From: Podarcis bocagei
Lineage: Eukaryota
DNA length: 64,000 nt
NCBI GenBank assembly: GCA_964188305.1
Contig: OZ076886.1
Strand: one strand, 5' to 3'
Of the stretch, positions 2,217 through 64,000 are shown piece by piece (within the stretch, counting starts at the first letter, position 1; each line of letters starts with the position of its first letter). The translations under genes were made by a program, and so were the position numbers. The notes under the pieces were generated by a model, which worked only from the letters and a program-made list of their open reading frames with translations, had not been told where the DNA came from and did no database searches.

Positions 2217-2751
2217 TCTTGGGAGAAAAGCAATGACAAACCTAGCCAGCATCTTAAAAAGTAGAGACATCACCTTGCCAACAAAGGTCCGTATAGTTAA
2301 AGCTATGGTTTTCCCAGTAGTGATGTATGGAAGTGAGAGCTGGACCATCAAGAAGGCTAATCGCCGAAGAATTGATGCTTTTGAATTGTGGTGCTGGAGG
2401 AGACTCTTGAGAGTCCCATGGACTGCAAGAAGATCAAACCTATCCATTCTGAAGGAAATCAGCCCTGAGTGCTCACTGGAAGGACAGATCCTGAAGCTGA
2501 GGCTCCAATACTTTGGCCACCTCATGAGAAGAGAAGACTCCCTGGAAAAGACCCTGATGTTGGGAAAGATGGAGGGCACAAGGAGAAGGGGACGACAGAG
2601 GACGAGATGGTTGGATAGTGTTCTCGAAGCTACCAGCATGAGTTTGACTAAACTGCAGGAGGCAGTGGAAGACAGGAGTGCCTGGCGTGCTCTGGTCCAT
2701 GGGGGTCACGAAGAGTTGGACACGACTAAACGACTAAACGACTAAACAACA
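2217..2751 (+). mobile_element. RTE-BovB LINE, 5'-truncated
   Basis: ORF 2233-2745 (MTNLASILKSRDITLPTKVRIVKAMVFPVVMYGSESWTIKKA...LKLRLQYFGHLMRREDSLEKTLMLGK) is the BovB RT C-terminus. Tail (CGACTAAA)n CAACAA. TSD AGTTACTAATT at 2206-2216 and 2752-2762. Confidence 0.93.
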
Positions 2752-3153
2752 AGTTACTAATTATGTAACCTATTAGTTTACCTATTAGCAACAGCATTCT
2801 TGGGCACCATGCCCCCCAAAAAGTGCAACCCAAAAATTGTGTGAGATCGTGGCGGTCCTTTTGGCTGCCGGGCTCTCACAAGAAAAAAATGTGACGTCCC
2901 ATCTCTAAATGACATTGCCATTTCTAAATTTGCACCTATAAATATAAATCAGCATGTGCAATCTTTATGCAAACTTGTGCATAAAGCCCATTGGCCTGAG
3001 ACAGTGGGGCTCTTCTTGTGTTTTTCTCAGCCTACACTGAAACAGCTTCACTGCGGATAGGCCATTTCTGCTTAGGAAATTCTTACAAACTTCAGAATTA
3101 ACTTCTCAGCGGATCACCTTTTCTCTCTCTCATTCATATATATATATATATCT

Positions 3154-4229
3154 ATGCAGGTTTTGGTGTCTTCGGGTGTCTTCCCGTGTAAGAGTTGGGG
3201 TGTCTAGGCGACGTTTCGACGAGGTCTTACTCGTCATCTTCAGGCTGGTGCTTTCGGCTTCTTGTTACTGGAACAGAGCAGGATCTCAGTGTTTGAGTTC
3301 CTATAAATACTGTTGAGGGGGTGTGGTGTATAGCCTCCAACGTTCTGGGCAGAGAGGAAGTTCCCAGGTTAGTGTGTCTTTTCTTCTTTTGTTCATTAAT
3401 TACTTGAGGGATATCTTGAGTGATTTCTTGAGTGATATTCTGAGTACCACTTAGGAGGGTCATTAGGTGTGGATTAGTTGCTAAAGCTTTCGTGTCTTGA
3501 CCTCTTGAGCTTGTGAAGAGTTTTTTCTGAGAAGATGGCTGTACTGCACTTAGTTGTGCTCTGGCTTGGCTTCGTGTATAGGGGCGAGCTGTGGTTTTGT
3601 GCCCTGTGCCAGCCAGATCTGTGTAGGGATTGCAGGGGGGTGCAGCATCCGGAGGTGCCACTATGGTTTGGCTACTGGATGGTGTCTGTAATTTATCTGT
3701 GGAGAGGGTCTGGGTTTGGGTCTGGTGTGGTTGATTGGAGATGGCGTTCTGTGTGCCTCTGGTTCTGGTGTCGGTTTTTGTGGGGAGGGCTATTTTCCAG
3801 ATGTCTGGCAGGCGGGACGTATCGTCACGCTTGTTCATGTTGTGAGGGTGTTTCTCTATCTCGATGGCTTCCATGATTATTCTCTTGTGGTGGTGTTCCA
3901 TGTTAAAGAGCAATTTGGAATCTGAAAAATTAATTTCGTGTCCTGTTTCTTTCATGTGTTGGTAAAGAGAGGAAGTTTTTTCTTCTTTTTTGACGGCATT
4001 CTTGTGTTCTGCGATACGTGCATTTATTCGTCTGTTTGTTTGTCCAATGTACGTGGCTGGGCAGACTTTGCAGGGTATTTCATAGACCCCTTGGTTTTCT
4101 AACTGGATTTTATCTTTGGGGTTTCTGAGGATATTGGCTATTTTTTGGTTGGTGCAAAAGGCTGTTTTGATATTGTGTTTATGGAGGATTTTGCTAATTT
4201 TATCTGTAGTGCCCTTGATATAAGGAAGG
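3154..4229 (-). mobile_element. Penelope-like element 3' fragment (GIY-YIG endonuclease, C-terminal tail and terminal repeat), 5'-truncated
   Basis: Colinear with 61041-62116 (offset 57887), and the translations in the ORF track are identical. Motif GVYEIPCKVCPATYIGQT. (TA)n tracts on both sides. Confidence 0.93.
3204..3248 (-). ncRNA. Minimal type I hammerhead ribozyme motif in PLE terminal repeat (copy 1)
   Basis: Minus strand reads CCAGC CUGAAGA U GACGAG-uaagac-CUCGUC GAAA CGUC GCCUAG: CUGANGA and GAAA cores, a 6-bp stem II and a vestigial palindromic stem III. Stem I pairing is weak. Confidence 0.7.
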
Positions 4230-7200
4230 CAAATAGAAAGCAAATATATATCTATATATATATAAAACCACCAACCCTTAGTGTCATCCTGTGTGTCTGC
4301 ACTTGTACTCTTCCTCCCTGCTCCTTTTTTCCTGCCTTCTGTTAATTTGAAAATGTGCTTTTACAGATATAATTCTAACTAGGCGCCCGGCTGGATTAAT
4401 TTAGCAGAATACAGTAATTATGTCCACAAAGAGGGAAAGGGGACAGTGCTGGAAAAGGAGGGCTGGCTTTTCTTTTATTGAACACCTGGGGCTTCCAGGT
4501 TGCAAATTATTAAGCATTTTGGAAAGACTCCCACAGCCGTGCTAAATTGTCCCTATGTTTCTCTGCTCAAGCTGGACTGACAAGCATCCTAACCTTCAGG
4601 AGCGGGGTAACCTTCTGATTGAGGTGAGGGGGGGGGGGAGAGCAGGAGCATTTATTTTTCAGAACACGTCCCACAAGCTCACTTAAATGTAATTCAGTCC
4701 TTTGTAAGGGTAAAACTAAGGGTAAAACTACATACAATTGCAGTGTAATGTGTAGTTTTACCCTTAGTTCAGTGCTAAGGCTTACAAAGGACTGAATTAC
4801 ATTTAAGTGAGCTTGTGGGACGTGTTCTGAAAAATAAATGTTAGTCTGACAGGGCTTCTTCTTTTTCATTCCACTGCAAAAAAACAAACAAACCATGAGA
4901 GGGGAGCTTTGCAGCTGTGATGAGGAAGCAATGCTCAACCCATTCCCTGAAGGCTGCATTTCCCCAAATCTCCTCCCAGCTGCTCCCTCCCCCTGCCTCA
5001 CTGTCCCAGACCTGAATCTGTGAGGTAAACACTGTTGGAATCTCCGTTACAACCGAGCTGATAAAGCTCATCTTCCGGAATCGCCCTCCGAGGTAATTGA
5101 CGACCTGAGCCTCTGATAAGGCTCTAGGCACATCCCGCTCAGCAGAGAATCCAAAACAGCATGTGGAAGTGATGAGATTTATGGCTAAATGCTATGCTTT
5201 ATTTCTTACTATGCAGATAGCAAAGAATTATACATCCTCTCTCTATGAAAGCAGAGAGCAACTCAGCAAAGGAACAGGAAACCACTAACGTCACATCCCG
5301 TCTCCCGTGAGACTTCCAATAGCCTGGACTGTCTCTGGAATGTAAACAGAGTCCTGTGACTCTAAGCAGCTGCACAGTGGCAAACAGAAATTAACAAACA
5401 CAAGTCCAGAACAAGGGCAAGTGGTGCTGCGGGTAAAGTTTGAGAGAGGGAAGTGGCTGGCAGGGAAAGGGTTAAAACCACTCCCATAACAAAACACAGA
5501 GACCAAAGGATGTCTTGCAACAAAGAGGGGGACACAACGGGACTCCACAGTGCCACCTGGTGCCACAGTGTTATGAAGCATATAAAGCGCTTTATCTTTA
5601 CAAATGTAGCCGAGTTCTTTATATGCAGCTGCAGTGTAACATGTAGTTTGGCCCAGCTTTAGAGAATTGGGCTCCTTTTTCTCCTTGCAGTATTCCCCAA
5701 CCAAGCAAAAAATAAGTTGGGCAAGGGGAATGCCATACAGAAAAGGGGGGGGGGGAGAGAGAGAGAGACAGCTCTTATAATGCAAAGCAGAAAGAGGAAA
5801 GAAAAAGTCCAGATGCAAATAAAAGGAACAGATCATTGACAATGATGATAAATAATGACAAAAAATTGACCTCACACTGATACCACATGTCTGGCCTAAA
5901 CATTTGCCTATGAGTCACACCACCACCATGTGGCCATAAGACAAATGTTTCAAAGTTCATGCCCACAAAATGAGCCATTGCATTAATATACAAAACGAGA
6001 AAATTGATACTCTCAGAACACTCAGTATCCACGTTTTAAAACACCTAATCGCTAACAGCACAGTATACTGCCTTTTAAATACTAAAGTAATATTACTTTC
6101 TTGTGGAAAAAGCAACAAAATTACAAGACATGAATTCCTCCTGATAACAGAGAAACAATTACCAAATATTGAATACCAGAGACATTCAGAGAACTGATAC
6201 CGTGGCATAAATGCCCATGAGCTCATGTTTCATTCCTTTCCCTAATACCTTGGAGTAGAAAATGATGTGTGTGTGTTTATTTCCAAATCCACTTTAAAGA
6301 CACACCTGAGTGCTTGACTGCAACATCAGCCGATTATTACATTGCATTCAGAGCAGAGCAGAAGCTGGATTTTAATGCAGAAGGGGTCTTTCACAAACTG
6401 TGCTGAGAATGATTTAACAAGGGATCCTCCGCCACCAGTGGGAAACTGCCAAATCAAAACAAGCAGCCCGCAATATGCTCTTTCAACCATATTTAATATG
6501 GTTTCAGTAAGAAACAGACCCACCCAATGGCAACGCTTCTGAGAATCATTTGTGGGCTAACGTACGTAGCAGTTTTCCAGCACCTACGTAGATGTTAATG
6601 TTTGGCTCAGACTGTGGATGACTGCATATTTAGAAGAATTATACAGCCACGCAGAAGACCACAGGTCAGGAGGCATGATATGAGGCAGGGGAGTCCATGA
6701 CAGAAATAATTAGAAAACATCTAGGGATGATCTTTGCAGCAGCATCTGGAATATTACTGAAGAGCCAGGGGCTACTCAGAGCACAATTAGTGGAGGCTGT
6801 TCCATCCATACTTTTGGTCCTTTGTGCATGGAATGTTAAAATTGAGGTTTGTGGGGGGTTTTTACTGCAGGAATGTTTTGTTTGATTTTTCAGAGAAAAA
6901 TGGGTTTGGCATTTTTTATTTTGCCAAGGTTTAGCAGCCTTGCAGTCAAATTTGAAGACTCGCTGAATAAAGAACATAAAAGCAGATCGATATGTCTCAT
7001 GCAAATGTGCATAAGAAACAAAACCTTGATGGTTCTTCTGGGTAGGGAAAAAGATTGCTTAGGAGGTGATTTGGAGTGGAGAAGCAACAGGAGGTACTTA
7101 GCCTTTTTGGTGTCCATCATTTTCTATAAAAAAACCAAAACCTACCACTCACTGAAGCCTCTCTTCCTGTTGTGGAGTCCCAGGCATGTGCTTGCCCTCT

Positions 7201-60882: not shown

Positions 60883-60940
60883 TACTATCTTATTTATATA
60901 TTGCCTTATTCCGCAAAGTCTCAAGGTGATTTCCATCACA

Positions 60941-61012
<72 letters not shown>
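60941..61012. repeat. (GT)n(AT)n compound microsatellite at the PLE 3' junction
   Basis: About 20 bp of GT followed by about 50 bp of AT, directly joined to the element end. Confidence 0.95.
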
Positions 61013-61014
<2 letters not shown>

Positions 61015-61090
61015 TTTCGTAGATTTTCACGGGTACAGGAATGCAGGTTTTGGTGTCTTCGGGTGTCTTCCCGTGTAAGAGTTGGGGTGT

Positions 61091-61135
61091 CTAGGCGACG
61101 TTTCGACGAGGTCTCACTCGTCATCTTCAGGCTGG
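61091..61135 (-). ncRNA. Minimal type I hammerhead ribozyme motif in PLE terminal repeat (copy 2)
   Basis: Minus strand reads CCAGC CUGAAGA U GACGAG-ugagac-CUCGUC GAAA CGUC GCCUAG. PLE pseudo-LTRs are known to carry such minimal hammerheads. Confidence 0.72.
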
Positions 61136-63540
61136 TGCTTTCGGCTTCTTGTTACTGGAACAGAGCAGGATCTCAGTGTTTGAGTTCCTATAAATACTGT
61201 TGAGGGGGTGTGGTGTATAGCCTCCAACGTTCTGGGCAGAGAGGAAGTTCCCAGGTTAGTGTGTCTTTTCTTCTTTTGTTCATTAATTACTTGAGGGATA
61301 TCTTGAGTGATTTCTTGAGTGATATTCTGAGTACCACTTAGGAGGGTCATTAGGTGTGGATTAGTTGCTAAAGCTTTCGTGTCTTGACCTCTTGAGCTTG
61401 TGAAGAGTTTTTTCTGAGAAGATGGCTGTACTGCACTTAGTTGTGCTCTGGCTTGGCTTCGTGTATAGGGGCGAGCTGTGGTTTTGTGCCCTGTGCCAGC
61501 CAGATCTGTGTAGGGATTGCAGGGGGGTGCAGCATCCGGAGGTGCCACTATGGTTTGGCTACTGGATGGTGTCTGTAATTTATCTGTGGAGAGGGTCTGG
61601 GTTTGGGTCTGGTGTGGTTGATTGGAGATGGCGTTCTGTGTGCCTCTGGTTCTGGTGTCGGTTTTTGTGGGGAGGGCTATTTTCCAGATGTCTGGCAGGC
61701 GGGACGTATCGTCACGCTTGTTCATGTTGTGAGGGTGTTTCTCTATCTCGATGGCTTCCATGATTATTCTCTTGTGGTGGTGTTCCATGTTAAAGAGCAA
61801 TTTGGAATCTGAAAAATTAATTTCGTGTCCTGTTTCTTTCATGTGTTGGTAAAGAGAGGAAGTTTTTTCTTCTTTTTTGACGGCATTCTTGTGTTCTGCG
61901 ATACGTGCATTTATTCGTCTGTTTGTTTGTCCAATGTACGTGGCTGGGCAGACTTTGCAGGGTATTTCATAGACCCCTTGGTTTTCTAACTGGATTTTAT
62001 CTTTGGGGTTTCTGAGGATATTGGCTATTTTTTGGTTGGTGCAAAAGGCTGTTTTGATATTGTGTTTATGGAGGATTTTGCTAATTTTATCTGTAGTGCC
62101 CTTGATATAAGGAAGGAGGGCCATGCCATTGTTTTCTTCTGTGTCTTGGTTTTTGGGGGGTGTTTCTTTTTGGATTAGCTTCGTAACCCTGTTTTGCTGG
62201 TATCCGTTGGCGATTAACACATTTGAAAGATTCTGTAACTCAGTTGTCAAGTGGTCTTTGTCAGCCAGGCGTTTGGTTCTGGAGATGAGAGTCTTGGCTA
62301 CGGAGTTTATTTGTGCAGGGTGGTGGTGTGATTGTGCATGTAAGTAGCGGTTGGTGTGTGTTTTTTTCCGGTAGATAGTGTGTCCTAGGGAGCCATCAGG
62401 TTTTTTGTAGATTAGGACGTCAAGGAAGGGAAGTTGGTTGTTGGCTTCTATTTCCATAGTGAATTGTATTTTGGGGTGTAGGCTGTTGAGATGTGTGAGG
62501 AAGCTATCTAGTTTTTTCTTCCCGTGTGGCCAAATTACAAAGGTGTCGTCAACATACCTGAGCCAAAGTTTGGGTTTGTGTTCTGACTTGTCTAAAGCAT
62601 TGGTTTCAAAGTGTTCCATGTACAGATTTGCGATGACCGGTGAGAGGGGTGATCCCATAGGTGCTCCTTCTATCTGTTTGTATCTTTGTCCATTGTGGAT
62701 GAAGTACGTGTTGGTTAGGCAGTGGTTGGTCAGGTCCAGGATGTATTCGGGGGGATTGTATTTGTTTTGAATGGCTGTCAAGGCTTCATTAATGGGCACT
62801 TGTGTGAAGAGAGATACAACATCGAAGCTCACAAGTAGGTCGTCGGGATGTAGGTTTTGCTTCTTTATTGTTTCTATGAACTGGAAGGAGTTTGTAACGT
62901 GTGAAGCGATAGATTCTGCATAGGGCTGAAGTTGCTTAGCGAGAAATTTAGCGAGATTTTGTAGAGGTGAGCCTATGGAGCTGACTATTGGTCTGAGTGG
63001 TGTTCCTTCTTTGTGTATCTTGGGGAGACCGTAGAGTTTGGGGCATCTGGATGATTTTTCTCTGGGGATGATTCTTAGCTGGATTTCTTCACTGATAGGA
63101 GAGGCTTTTATTTTGGATTTGGTGGTTTTTTCCAGATAGGTGGTGGGATCTGTTTTTATAGGTTGGTAGGTAGGGTCTTGGAGTAGATTTGATAGTTTTG
63201 CTTGGTAGTCCGATGTGTTCATCACAACAGTGGCATTACCTTTGTCTGCTGGGAGAATGATTATGTTGTTGTCTTTCCTCAGGTTGGTGAGTGCTTTCTG
63301 TTCTTCTTTGTGTAAATTGCTTCTGGGTGGTTTGCTGGAGCAGAGGATGTTGGTGACTTCAAGTCTGATTTTATTGGCTTCATCTGGGTTGATTTTGGTT
63401 AGGCTAGCTTCGACTCCGCATATGATGTTTTCCGTGGGGATGCGTCTCGGGGCGACTGCAAAGTTGAAACCTTTGGAGAGTACTTTGGTTTCAGTTGAGG
63501 TGAGGATCCTGTCTGATATGTTATGTACTGTTTGTTTCAT
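61114..63540 (-). CDS. PLE reverse transcriptase / GIY-YIG endonuclease (808 aa from an internal Met; the true N-terminus lies upstream across a frameshift)
   Basis: Motifs ILPADKGNATVVM, LYGLPKIHKEGTPLRPIVSSIGSP, LVSFDVVSLFT, GAPMGSPLSPVIANLYM, WLRYVDD, LPFLDV, YRKKTHTNRYL, and GVYEIPCKVCPATYIGQTNRRINARIAEH. Confidence 0.95.
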   Translation of the reverse strand: MKQTVHNISDRILTSTETKVLSKGFNFAVAPRRIPTENIICGVEASLTKINPDEANKIRLEVTNILCSSKPPRSNLHKEEQKALTNLRKDNNIIILPADKGNATVVMNTSDYQAKLSNLLQDPTYQPIKTDPTTYLEKTTKSKIKASPISEEIQLRIIPREKSSRCPKLYGLPKIHKEGTPLRPIVSSIGSPLQNLAKFLAKQLQPYAESIASHVTNSFQFIETIKKQNLHPDDLLVSFDVVSLFTQVPINEALTAIQNKYNPPEYILDLTNHCLTNTYFIHNGQRYKQIEGAPMGSPLSPVIANLYMEHFETNALDKSEHKPKLWLRYVDDTFVIWPHGKKKLDSFLTHLNSLHPKIQFTMEIEANNQLPFLDVLIYKKPDGSLGHTIYRKKTHTNRYLHAQSHHHPAQINSVAKTLISRTKRLADKDHLTTELQNLSNVLIANGYQQNRVTKLIQKETPPKNQDTEENNGMALLPYIKGTTDKISKILHKHNIKTAFCTNQKIANILRNPKDKIQLENQGVYEIPCKVCPATYIGQTNRRINARIAEHKNAVKKEEKTSSLYQHMKETGHEINFSDSKLLFNMEHHHKRIIMEAIEIEKHPHNMNKRDDTSRLPDIWKIALPTKTDTRTRGTQNAISNQPHQTQTQTLSTDKLQTPSSSQTIVAPPDAAPPCNPYTDLAGTGHKTTARPYTRSQARAQLSAVQPSSQKKLFTSSRGQDTKALATNPHLMTLLSGTQNITQEITQDIPQVINEQKKKRHTNLGTSSLPRTLEAIHHTPSTVFIGTQTLRSCSVPVTRSRKHQPEDDE

Positions 63541-64000
63541 GGGTTGTTGTGGAGGGTGGCTGGGCTTCTGGCGTTTCTCTAGTTTGTGGAGTTTGTTGGT
63601 GTGTGTGTCTGTCTTATGTGCGGACTCCGTTTCAGCTCTCCAAACGGCTAGTTGTTTGCATTTGTCCCAGAGTGCAGGGTGGATTTTGTTACAAAGTTTG
63701 AGGTGAAGAGTGAGCAGATCTTTGTTGGTTTGGTTTAGTAGGTATCTTTTCTTATGTAGTTCGTTTCTGATTAGGGATAGTTCAGTTCGTTTCAGGATCT
63801 TTCGGTAGCTGGGGTTTTAGAGTGGAATTTAAGTTGGAAGCATGTGGGAATTAAGTTGTTGTCTCGGCAGTTGCGTAGGAACAAGAGATCACATAAGATG
63901 GTGGCTCTTCGGATTTCTAGTTTCTCGTAGGTTCTTGTCAGCTGGAAGGTTTCCTCCCCGTAGAGGTGAGATATTTGCTTTCGTAGATTTTCACGGGTAC

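Follow-up and report, generated by a model that had tools for sequence, protein, structure and literature searches.

Can a single minimal hammerhead at the boundary between two tandem units of a retroelement hold both the stop codon of one open reading frame (ORF) and the start codon of the next, so that the ORF exceeds the unit that encodes it? The question is raised by one end of a 64,000-nt stretch of Podarcis bocagei DNA (contig OZ076886.1, assembly GCA_964188305.1), hereafter the window. A sequence-only reading had described such an arrangement there, in a Penelope-like element (PLE) with a minimal hammerhead in its pseudo-LTR (pLTR), and the present analysis followed it up, confirming the observation and supporting its interpretation in part.

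Element in the window

The window contains two copies of the element, designated A and B; their features are collected in Table 1. The period of copy A is 2964 nt, as had been proposed, since positions 61012-61037 and 63976-64000 are identical. The copy is a partial tandem with pLTRs: the 113 nt following the AUG recur 3' of the ORF, and the upstream pLTR lies beyond the window. The usual 3' end of insertions, defined by comparison of copies and by loose ends in reads, is position 61041, and in copy A positions 61012-61040 form a 29-nt extension (a 'tail') beyond it; PLEs of this clade characteristically insert in microsatellite or AT-rich DNA and have tails of 30-40 nt. Copies A and B differ by one base in 1076 (61115 vs 3228), and this is the lone UGA to UAA difference that had been spotted between the two hammerheads.

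Table 1. Features of the element in the window; all lie on the minus strand, the (TA)n target aside.
Feature	Position	Strand	Remark
Copy A, Penelope/Poseidon-type retroelement	61012..64000	-	one unit and the first 113 nt of a second; 5' side past the window edge
Copy B, 5'-truncated, with TA-repeat flanks	3154..4229	-	99.9% identical to copy A; stops at the usual 3' end
(TA)n microsatellite, insertion target of the element	60960..61011	.	(TA)26 abuts 61012
Codons 2-37 of the ORF, repeated as 3' pLTR	61012..61121	-	
Minimal hammerhead, copy A	61097..61130 (read 61130-61097)	-	CUGAAGA core, bulged U, 6-bp helix II, 6-nt loop, GAAAC, GUC
Minimal hammerhead, copy B	3243-3210	-	
Reverse transcriptase (RT) and GIY-YIG endonuclease (EN) frame with 184-codon C-terminal tail	61114..63816	-	open from stop 63819-63817 to UGA 61116-61114
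UGA ending the RT/EN frame, within the loop of helix II	61114..61116	-	UAA in copy B
AUG from core base A9, bulged U and G10.1	61122..61124	-	ORF start of the next unit
Conserved N-terminal domain	63797..63998	-	in the hammerhead-AUG frame
Interval of the single frameshift of copy A	63794..63819	-	

The encoded protein is recognized by Pfam as a PLE-type RT (RVT_1, E 1.2e-15). The GIY-YIG match (residues 522-566, E 9.7e-4) is weaker than the Pfam cut-off; residues G522, Y524, Y535, G537, R541, E549 and H550 are invariant in an alignment of 14 sequences (A1). The architecture PF00078, PF28514, PF26215 is found in 3032 homologues, the best of them being a Podarcis muralis protein with 95% identity. 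A P. muralis locus (L003), checked for a full-length annotated copy, yielded just a pair of inverted copies truncated at the 5' end; it shares the UGA with which the RT/EN frame closes.

Minimal hammerhead motif

The window contains the 34-nt motif twice, while none is expected (100 shuffles). CUGAAGA, GAAA and GUC (the NUH cleavage triplet) are present in both copies, and across 20 relatives the columns of the core vary little or not at all. Helix III is lacking, the cut is predicted between 61097 and 61096, and the helix II hairpin is part of both the MFE and the centroid folds. An Rfam scan of positions 60900-61400 (E <= 10) returned no hammerhead family, yielding just microsatellite-driven miRNA matches. 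Since the Rfam models are evidently blind to the motif without helix III, the hammerhead was called by the published minimal PLE descriptor, which it fits, together with covariation.

The RNA structure of the hammerhead is under selection across the relatives. Overall, 96% of cells are paired, compared to 58% in shuffled and 29-48% in slid alignments, and double-sided changes are seen in seven of the eight pairs. In the 20 relatives helix II is 97.5% paired, with double-sided changes in five of its six pairs. Helix I has only two contiguous pairs (92.5% paired in the same relatives), both of which covary; 4-5 bp is the norm for the minimal type, and a 2-bp helix I is on record for Penelope of D. 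virilis. Minimal PLE hammerheads are poor at cleaving and are expected to work as dimers (Cervera and de la Pena 2014, PMC4209133).

Stop, start and reading frames in copy A

The RT/EN ORF comprises 808 codons, with its first in-frame AUG at 63540, and ends inside the hammerhead. As the sequence-only reading had it, the same hammerhead contains a putative start in another frame: the AUG at 61124-61122 opens 37 codons that continue up to 61012, the border of the (TA)n tract. The nearest in-frame stop 5' of this AUG is at 61154, no other AUG intervenes, and core base A6 occupies the favourable -3 position.

The frame opened by the hammerhead AUG leads into an N-terminal region that recurs at the edge of the window. 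There, the frame that is open between 63998 and its stop at 63794 aligns with a homologue, P0009, over residues 2-68 (54% identity, E 3e-25); the domain was identified by this BLASTP match, as Pfam gave no matches for the 67-residue piece. The RT frame from 63816 matches P0009 residues 67-146 (E 9e-12). As the P0009 matches switch frame between 63794 and 63819, copy A has exactly one frameshift, located in this interval, where other copies have one letter more in reads and contigs; the sequence-only reading had likewise assumed one missing base. Being frameshifted, copy A is unable to make the protein itself.

The AUG equivalent to the one at 61124 is expected one period upstream, at 64088, past the window end, as had been noted, and the distance from 64088 to 61114 is 2975 nt. 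Because of the frameshift and the position of this upstream AUG outside the window, copy A points to an ORF exceeding the unit by extrapolation only.

The C-terminal tail of the RT/EN frame is open over 184 codons, while the other two frames contain 10 and 8 stops; its openness by chance is rejected by shuffling (P about 5e-4). In a transcribed subfamily the tail differs by compensating +1/-1 indels and has no stops. Constraint on the tail is weaker, with 5 synonymous vs 6 non-synonymous differences. Depletion of upstream AUGs in the tail, which would be a sign of a 5' leader, is not significant (3 seen vs 4.9 expected).

Layout in related elements

The layout at the unit boundary was compared in related elements. 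In L090 (62% identical) the tandem junction can be read directly: the CUGA core provides its UGA as the stop, and after 2 nt comes the AUG leading into the N-terminal domain. The stop of L089 is the same core UGA, and stop and start are 2 nt apart in both. In L084, a Logan contig with a 30-nt terminal overlap, the hammerhead AUG lies in frame, with no ATG before it. In an Anolis locus (L002), the ORF 3001-5511 starts at the A9-U-G of a hammerhead at 2995; the ORF of the Anolis element stops 127 nt short of the next AUG.

In L001 an ORF of 2985 nt exceeds the period of 2911 nt by 74 nt; for the window element the value of unit plus 11 nt is extrapolated, and in L090 the ORF equals the unit minus 2 nt.

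In a quick tree the window element falls into a clade of 8 rows (SH-aLRT 96), and the hammerhead AUG is present in all five members with a readable layout. The direct readings in L090, L001, L084 and Anolis L002 support the hammerhead AUG as the genuine ORF start in this lineage. A start inside the hammerhead is not new, having been published for PAc, a Poseidon-type PLE of Anolis carolinensis (Frangieh et al. 2024, PMC11167929). What is apparently new is the missing untranslated spacer, which recurs in the clade; with no such spacer, the ORF becomes about as long as the unit or longer.

The start-in-hammerhead layout is not universal, as several relatives have a bulged A, thus forming no AUG, and start the ORF 50-165 nt 3' of the hammerhead. 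Of 20 relatives, 12 have U and 8 have A as the bulged base; the AUG within the hammerhead of L032 opens just a 17-codon upstream ORF. The stop varies in position between 134 nt ahead of the AUG and 74 nt past it.

RNA reads

Sense-strand RNA of the element is present: reads span the unit and run unbroken across the hammerhead, with no pile-up of molecule ends at the predicted cut (61096/61097). Informative RNA-only joints were not found in the RNA reads; the joints listed all come from a contig set that probably represents DNA, and they arise from insertions that are adjacent or nested. As the RNA reads are derived mostly from diverged copies, many of which probably lie inside host transcripts, the coverage is no proof of autonomous expression. 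The reads lend no support to the translation/template switch or the translated circular monomer that the sequence-only reading had proposed. Moreover, the junction of a ligated circle is identical in sequence to a tandem junction, so short reads cannot separate the two.

Possible mechanism and its alternatives

The explanation that we favour, and consider rather probable, is that the element is a recently active EN+ PLE of the Penelope/Poseidon clade that integrated into a (TA)n tract in a lacertid lizard, with a spacerless unit, a start-bearing hammerhead and an uncleaved transcript that serves as both mRNA and template. In this scheme the hammerhead near the unit boundary would supply the start codon, and in the window family its helix II loop also contains the stop of the preceding unit. 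With start and stop placed in hammerheads, full-length protein needs RNA extending from upstream of one hammerhead through the next; such RNA would be a pLTR-ORF-pLTR transcript of a partial tandem, and we infer its ends, like the use of the AUG in vivo, from this anatomy. The uncleaved transcript would most likely be translated and also be the template of target-primed reverse transcription, which would begin internally, about 84 nt past the downstream AUG, rebuilding the 3' pLTR. The hammerhead may be a weak, dimer-type or protein-assisted ribozyme. The predicted cut after GUC lies 3' of the AUG, as had been stated; being 25 nt past it, the cut would detach the start codon from the remainder of the ORF, so that cleavage would plausibly stop the RNA from being translated further, perhaps in a feedback by the element's own protein. 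In PAc, cleavage requires the protein, the insertion substrate is unprocessed RNA, and RT initiates internally (PMC11167929).

The overlap of start and hammerhead might instead be incidental, the AUG being a by-product of the core and the U bulge, and the long tail a drifting read-through of a functional UTR or promoter, with no meaning for expression. The mixture of U and A at the bulge, the short upstream ORF of L032, the widely ranging stop and the weaker constraint on the tail all agree with this. Yet, within the clade of the window element, the hammerhead AUG is the earliest one in frame with a conserved domain that has no other start, the tail is open and keeps its frame via paired indels, and PAc protein produced recombinantly from this start shows activity (PMC11167929), which renders mere coincidence unlikely. 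The folded uncleaved hammerhead could also be a platform for internal ribosome entry or reinitiation, at which ribosomes terminating at the UGA 8 nt past the AUG, or travelling on host read-through transcripts, would start without a cap-proximal 5' end. The proximity of stop and start (within 11 nt in the window element, 2 nt in L089 and L090) is reminiscent of termination-reinitiation systems; hammerheads in UTRs of RNA viruses promote cap-independent translation (PMC13725137), and the same is reported for HDV-like ribozymes of non-LTR retrotransposons (Ruminski 2011, as described in a citing paper). However, the published cases cut upstream of the start and need catalysis, whereas the cut here is downstream of the AUG, and relatives in which 35-134 nt separate the stop from the AUG, or in which the ORF starts 3' of the hammerhead, have no need of such a platform. 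We regard it as quite unlikely.

A further possibility, in our judgement very unlikely, is that one PLE clade recruited the hammerhead core to mark stop and start together (C-UGA-AG-AUG, or AUG...UGA within 11 nt). In that case RNA that is multi-unit or circular would form a coding ring with no seam, in which ribosomes stop and restart inside the ribozyme, and a protein-assisted cut between the AUG and the ORF would switch the RNA from message to template. Coding by circular RNA appears highly improbable. It would require two hammerhead cuts and ligation into a unit-length circle, rejoining the AUG, so that a ribosome reads slightly over one lap; the circle might also be the rolling-circle template behind the pLTRs. 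The geometry of ORF and unit fits (+11 nt in the window element, -2 nt in L090, +74 nt in L001), the terminal overlap of L084 is as expected of a tandem or a circle, and metazoan retrozymes with the same hammerhead type, for which an origin from PLE pLTRs has been proposed, form circular RNAs. But the RNA reads have no ends at the cut site, nor are such ends seen in Anolis PAc, where catalytic mutants have no effect on insertion in vitro (PMC11167929); minimal PLE hammerheads cleave weakly (PMC4209133); and the junction, being the same as that of a tandem, yields no positive evidence.

With the start, and sometimes the stop too, inside a ribozyme whose predicted cut falls between the start and the gene body, cleavage and translation of one RNA are predicted to be mutually exclusive. 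About 30 nt are triply constrained, since one protein frame ends there, another begins, and the RNA adopts a covarying ribozyme fold, making this stretch a compact example of overlapping RNA and protein information.

Comparison with known systems

The closest known system is PAc, which resembles the window element in having a single ORF (N-terminal domain, RT, GIY-YIG EN) in tandem or pLTR organisation, and a minimal hammerhead with a bulged U, where the ORF begins at A9-U-G10.1 and the cut falls about 25-26 nt past the start codon. Insertion sites are AT-rich in both, and the 3' end is fixed by internal RT initiation. On the other hand, the proteins are just 47% identical and belong to different subclades in the quick tree. 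The Anolis ORF ends 127 nt before the next AUG, leaving a short UTR, while that of the lizard family studied here is 184 codons longer, stops in the hammerhead loop and leaves zero non-coding bases.

With the hammerheads described in PLE pLTRs (PMC4209133), the motif shares the CUGANGA core, an unpaired base 5' of a long helix II, GAAA, the GUC site, a short helix I and the absence of helix III. Those hammerheads were placed in flanking repeats, whereas in the window element and several relatives the motif lies within sequence that codes in two frames. Small ribozymes at an ORF start, tied to translation initiation, are likewise known from R2 and further non-LTR elements (HDV-like ribozymes) and from the UTRs of RNA viruses (hammerheads; PMC13725137). 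They cut 5' of the start and free a translatable end, unlike the window element, where the predicted cut after the AUG would remove the start. Finally, metazoan non-LTR retrozymes and viroid-like circular RNAs with endless ORFs provide parallels in their tandem type I hammerheads, proposed PLE origin and circle-readable unit; retrozymes, however, are short and non-coding, while the unit in the window encodes RT and EN in an ORF that terminates.

Reading frames and coding capacity

All features of the element lie on the minus strand of the window.

Features of the Penelope-like element and its hammerhead motifs
Feature	Position	Strand	Remark
Reverse transcriptase/endonuclease (RT/EN) ORF	63540 to 61114	-	808 codons
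UGA stop of the RT/EN ORF	61116-61114	-	within the helix II loop
Hammerhead AUG	61124-61122	-	frame one base off the RT/EN frame
34-nt hammerhead-like motif	61130-61097 and 3243-3210	-	expected 0 (100 shuffles)

The RT/EN ORF encodes a reverse transcriptase (RVT_1 domain, E 1.2e-15) and a GIY-YIG endonuclease; its best database hit, at 95% identity, is a protein of Podarcis muralis. The frame opened by the hammerhead AUG comprises 37 codons, extending to 61012, the start of a (TA)26 tract; the nearest in-frame stop 5' of this AUG is at 61154, with no other AUG in between. The period of the element is 2964, positions 61012-61037 being identical to 63976-64000.

At the window edge, the continuation of the hammerhead-AUG frame matches residues 2-68 of the homologous protein P0009 (E 3e-25), and the RT frame, taken from 63816 on, aligns with residues 67-146 (E 9e-12). 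Because the two frames match adjoining stretches of one protein, the window copy carries exactly one frameshift, inside 63794-63819; reads and contigs of other copies have one extra letter in this interval. The sequence-only reading had proposed an ORF longer than the repeat unit. Its arithmetic (an expected AUG at 64088 and 2975 nt to the stop) is correct, with the limits that this upstream AUG lies beyond the window and that the window copy is broken by the frameshift. UGA versus UAA, named there as the sole difference between the two hammerhead copies, is indeed the only one.

The C-terminal tail consists of 184 codons past the endonuclease and has no stops in the RT frame versus 10 and 8 in the other two (P about 5e-4 for such openness, composition-keeping shuffles). 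In a transcribed diverged subfamily, 5 synonymous and 6 non-synonymous changes separate the tail from that of the window; stops are again lacking, and two indels (+1 and -1) spaced 11 nt from each other (window 61397 and 61408) together preserve the frame. In RT/EN the corresponding counts are 16 synonymous vs 7 non-synonymous. On these counts the tail is translated, though loosely constrained. A short basic motif, x-T-R-S/A-x, a candidate peptide or RNA signal, is found a few residues ahead of the stop, just 5' of the hammerhead (window 61141-61165, minus strand), and also at the C-termini of the homologs P0004, P0005, P0007, P0009, P0011 and P0013, these relatives being only 45-62% identical.

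Hammerhead motif and its fold

The minimal hammerhead of Penelope-like elements (PLEs) has a CUGANGA core, a single unpaired base ahead of a long helix II, followed by GAAA and GUC, and a short helix I, and is devoid of helix III (Cervera and de la Pena, PMC4209133). The window motif fits this description. Its helix I has only 2 contiguous pairs. Rfam reports no hammerhead over it at E <= 10. The helix II hairpin is present in both the predicted minimum-energy and centroid folds. In the alignment of 20 related hammerheads, pairs are formed in 96% of cells, vs 58% in shuffles and 29-48% with partners slid. Double-sided changes are seen in 5 of 6 pairs of helix II and in both pairs of helix I. 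The RNA structure is thus under selection, despite these bases also coding for roughly the first nine codons.

In two relatives, L001 (117-150) and L084 (120-153), the core is replaced by UUGAAAA. Here U stands in for C3 and A for G8, so that a U3-A8 pair would take the place of the C3-G8 tertiary pair, and the ORF start is still at the A9-U-G position.

Start and stop codons in related elements

The start-in-hammerhead layout, published for an Anolis element (PMC11167929), is confirmed at the Anolis locus L002, where hammerheads are located at 2995 and 5633 and the ORF (3001-5511) starts at A9-U-G10.1. In L090, a contig with an element 62% identical to that of the window, a tandem junction is contained within one contig: the UGA within the CUGA core terminates the upstream ORF, and an AUG two bases past this stop opens a frame that continues through the conserved N-terminal domain until the contig end. 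The stop is likewise in the core in L089. In L001 (period 2911) the hammerhead-position AUG opens an ORF of 2985 nt, the unit plus 74 nt; in L084 the hammerhead AUG is the first ATG, in frame, and 134 nt are non-coding. The stop-to-AUG gap is 35 nt in L086, 42 nt in L087 and 57 nt in a Vipera copy.

In a quick tree, all these elements except the Anolis one form a single clade with the window element (SH-aLRT 96); in its sister group the ORF starts downstream of the hammerhead, and the Anolis element falls outside, adjoining a relative with A as the bulged base. Among the more distant relatives, it is common to find A as the bulged base (no AUG) or an ORF beginning 50-165 nt past the hammerhead, and their units contain 127-352 non-coding nt. 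Hence the start-in-hammerhead layout is typical of the window clade and not universal, and the window family lies at the compact extreme.

Proteins with 43-50% identity come from numerous insects (beetles, termites, Lepidoptera, bees), echinoderms, fish and metagenome contigs; this patchy distribution may involve horizontal transfer.

RNA reads, insertion ends and genomic context

Assuming the standard library layout, in which first mates are complementary to the RNA, the majority of reads of a stranded RNA-seq run are, over most of the unit, consistent with sense-strand RNA. The reads span the entire unit, uninterrupted over the hammerhead, and in this run molecule ends do not build up at the predicted cut site (61096/61097). 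As the reads derive mostly from diverged copies, and many probably from within host transcripts, they do not establish autonomous expression, transcript ends or circles. Two read sets (7 and 8 reads) depart from the element precisely at the hammerhead's first base (window 61131-61133), which suggests that there are expressed truncated copies with a 5' end at the ribozyme boundary, not at the cut site.

The usual 3' end of insertions is 61041; the window copy ends 29 nt beyond it, as does the Vipera copy (L088:1230-1400). Both alternative ends, 61041 and 61012, abut (TA)n. They agree with reverse transcription initiating internally, as published, and with the 'tail' of PLEs.

A SINE-like repeat (2240-2760, minus strand) adjoins the second, truncated copy in the window, and the first 6 kb hold further interspersed repeats and microsatellites, e.g. 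(AAT)n near 1110-1180. In Podarcis muralis (L003:2393-7048) two 5'-truncated copies of the window family form a head-to-head inverted pair, the hammerhead of each facing outward.

Proposed role of the hammerhead

The anatomy is secure; for the functional steps, we infer that an uncleaved transcript, from 5' of one hammerhead through the next, would serve as both message and template. Cleavage would be weak, possibly helped by the element's own protein, and would detach the AUG from the ORF, ending translation of that RNA. We regard this overall picture as fairly probable.

That the overlap of the ORF ends with the hammerhead is incidental seems unlikely, and that the folded hammerhead acts as an internal-entry or reinitiation element slightly more so. 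Short reads cannot separate a ligated circle from a tandem junction, since the sequence is identical; translation of a circle is the least probable of these alternatives.

Comparison with known systems

The window element is one of the Penelope/Poseidon PLEs, with the minimal hammerhead of that group, and a start codon within the hammerhead is already known. In a non-exhaustive literature search we found no description of a stop codon also inside the ribozyme (in the loop or as the core UGA), nor of a unit without an untranslated base, whose ORF roughly equals or exceeds the repeat unit in length. For the published Anolis carolinensis PLE, the element's own protein is required for cleavage, the insertion substrate is unprocessed RNA, and RNA-seq ends at the cut site are absent (PMC11167929). 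In ribozyme-assisted translation of R2-type elements and RNA viruses, the cut is upstream of the start codon, unlike in the window element.
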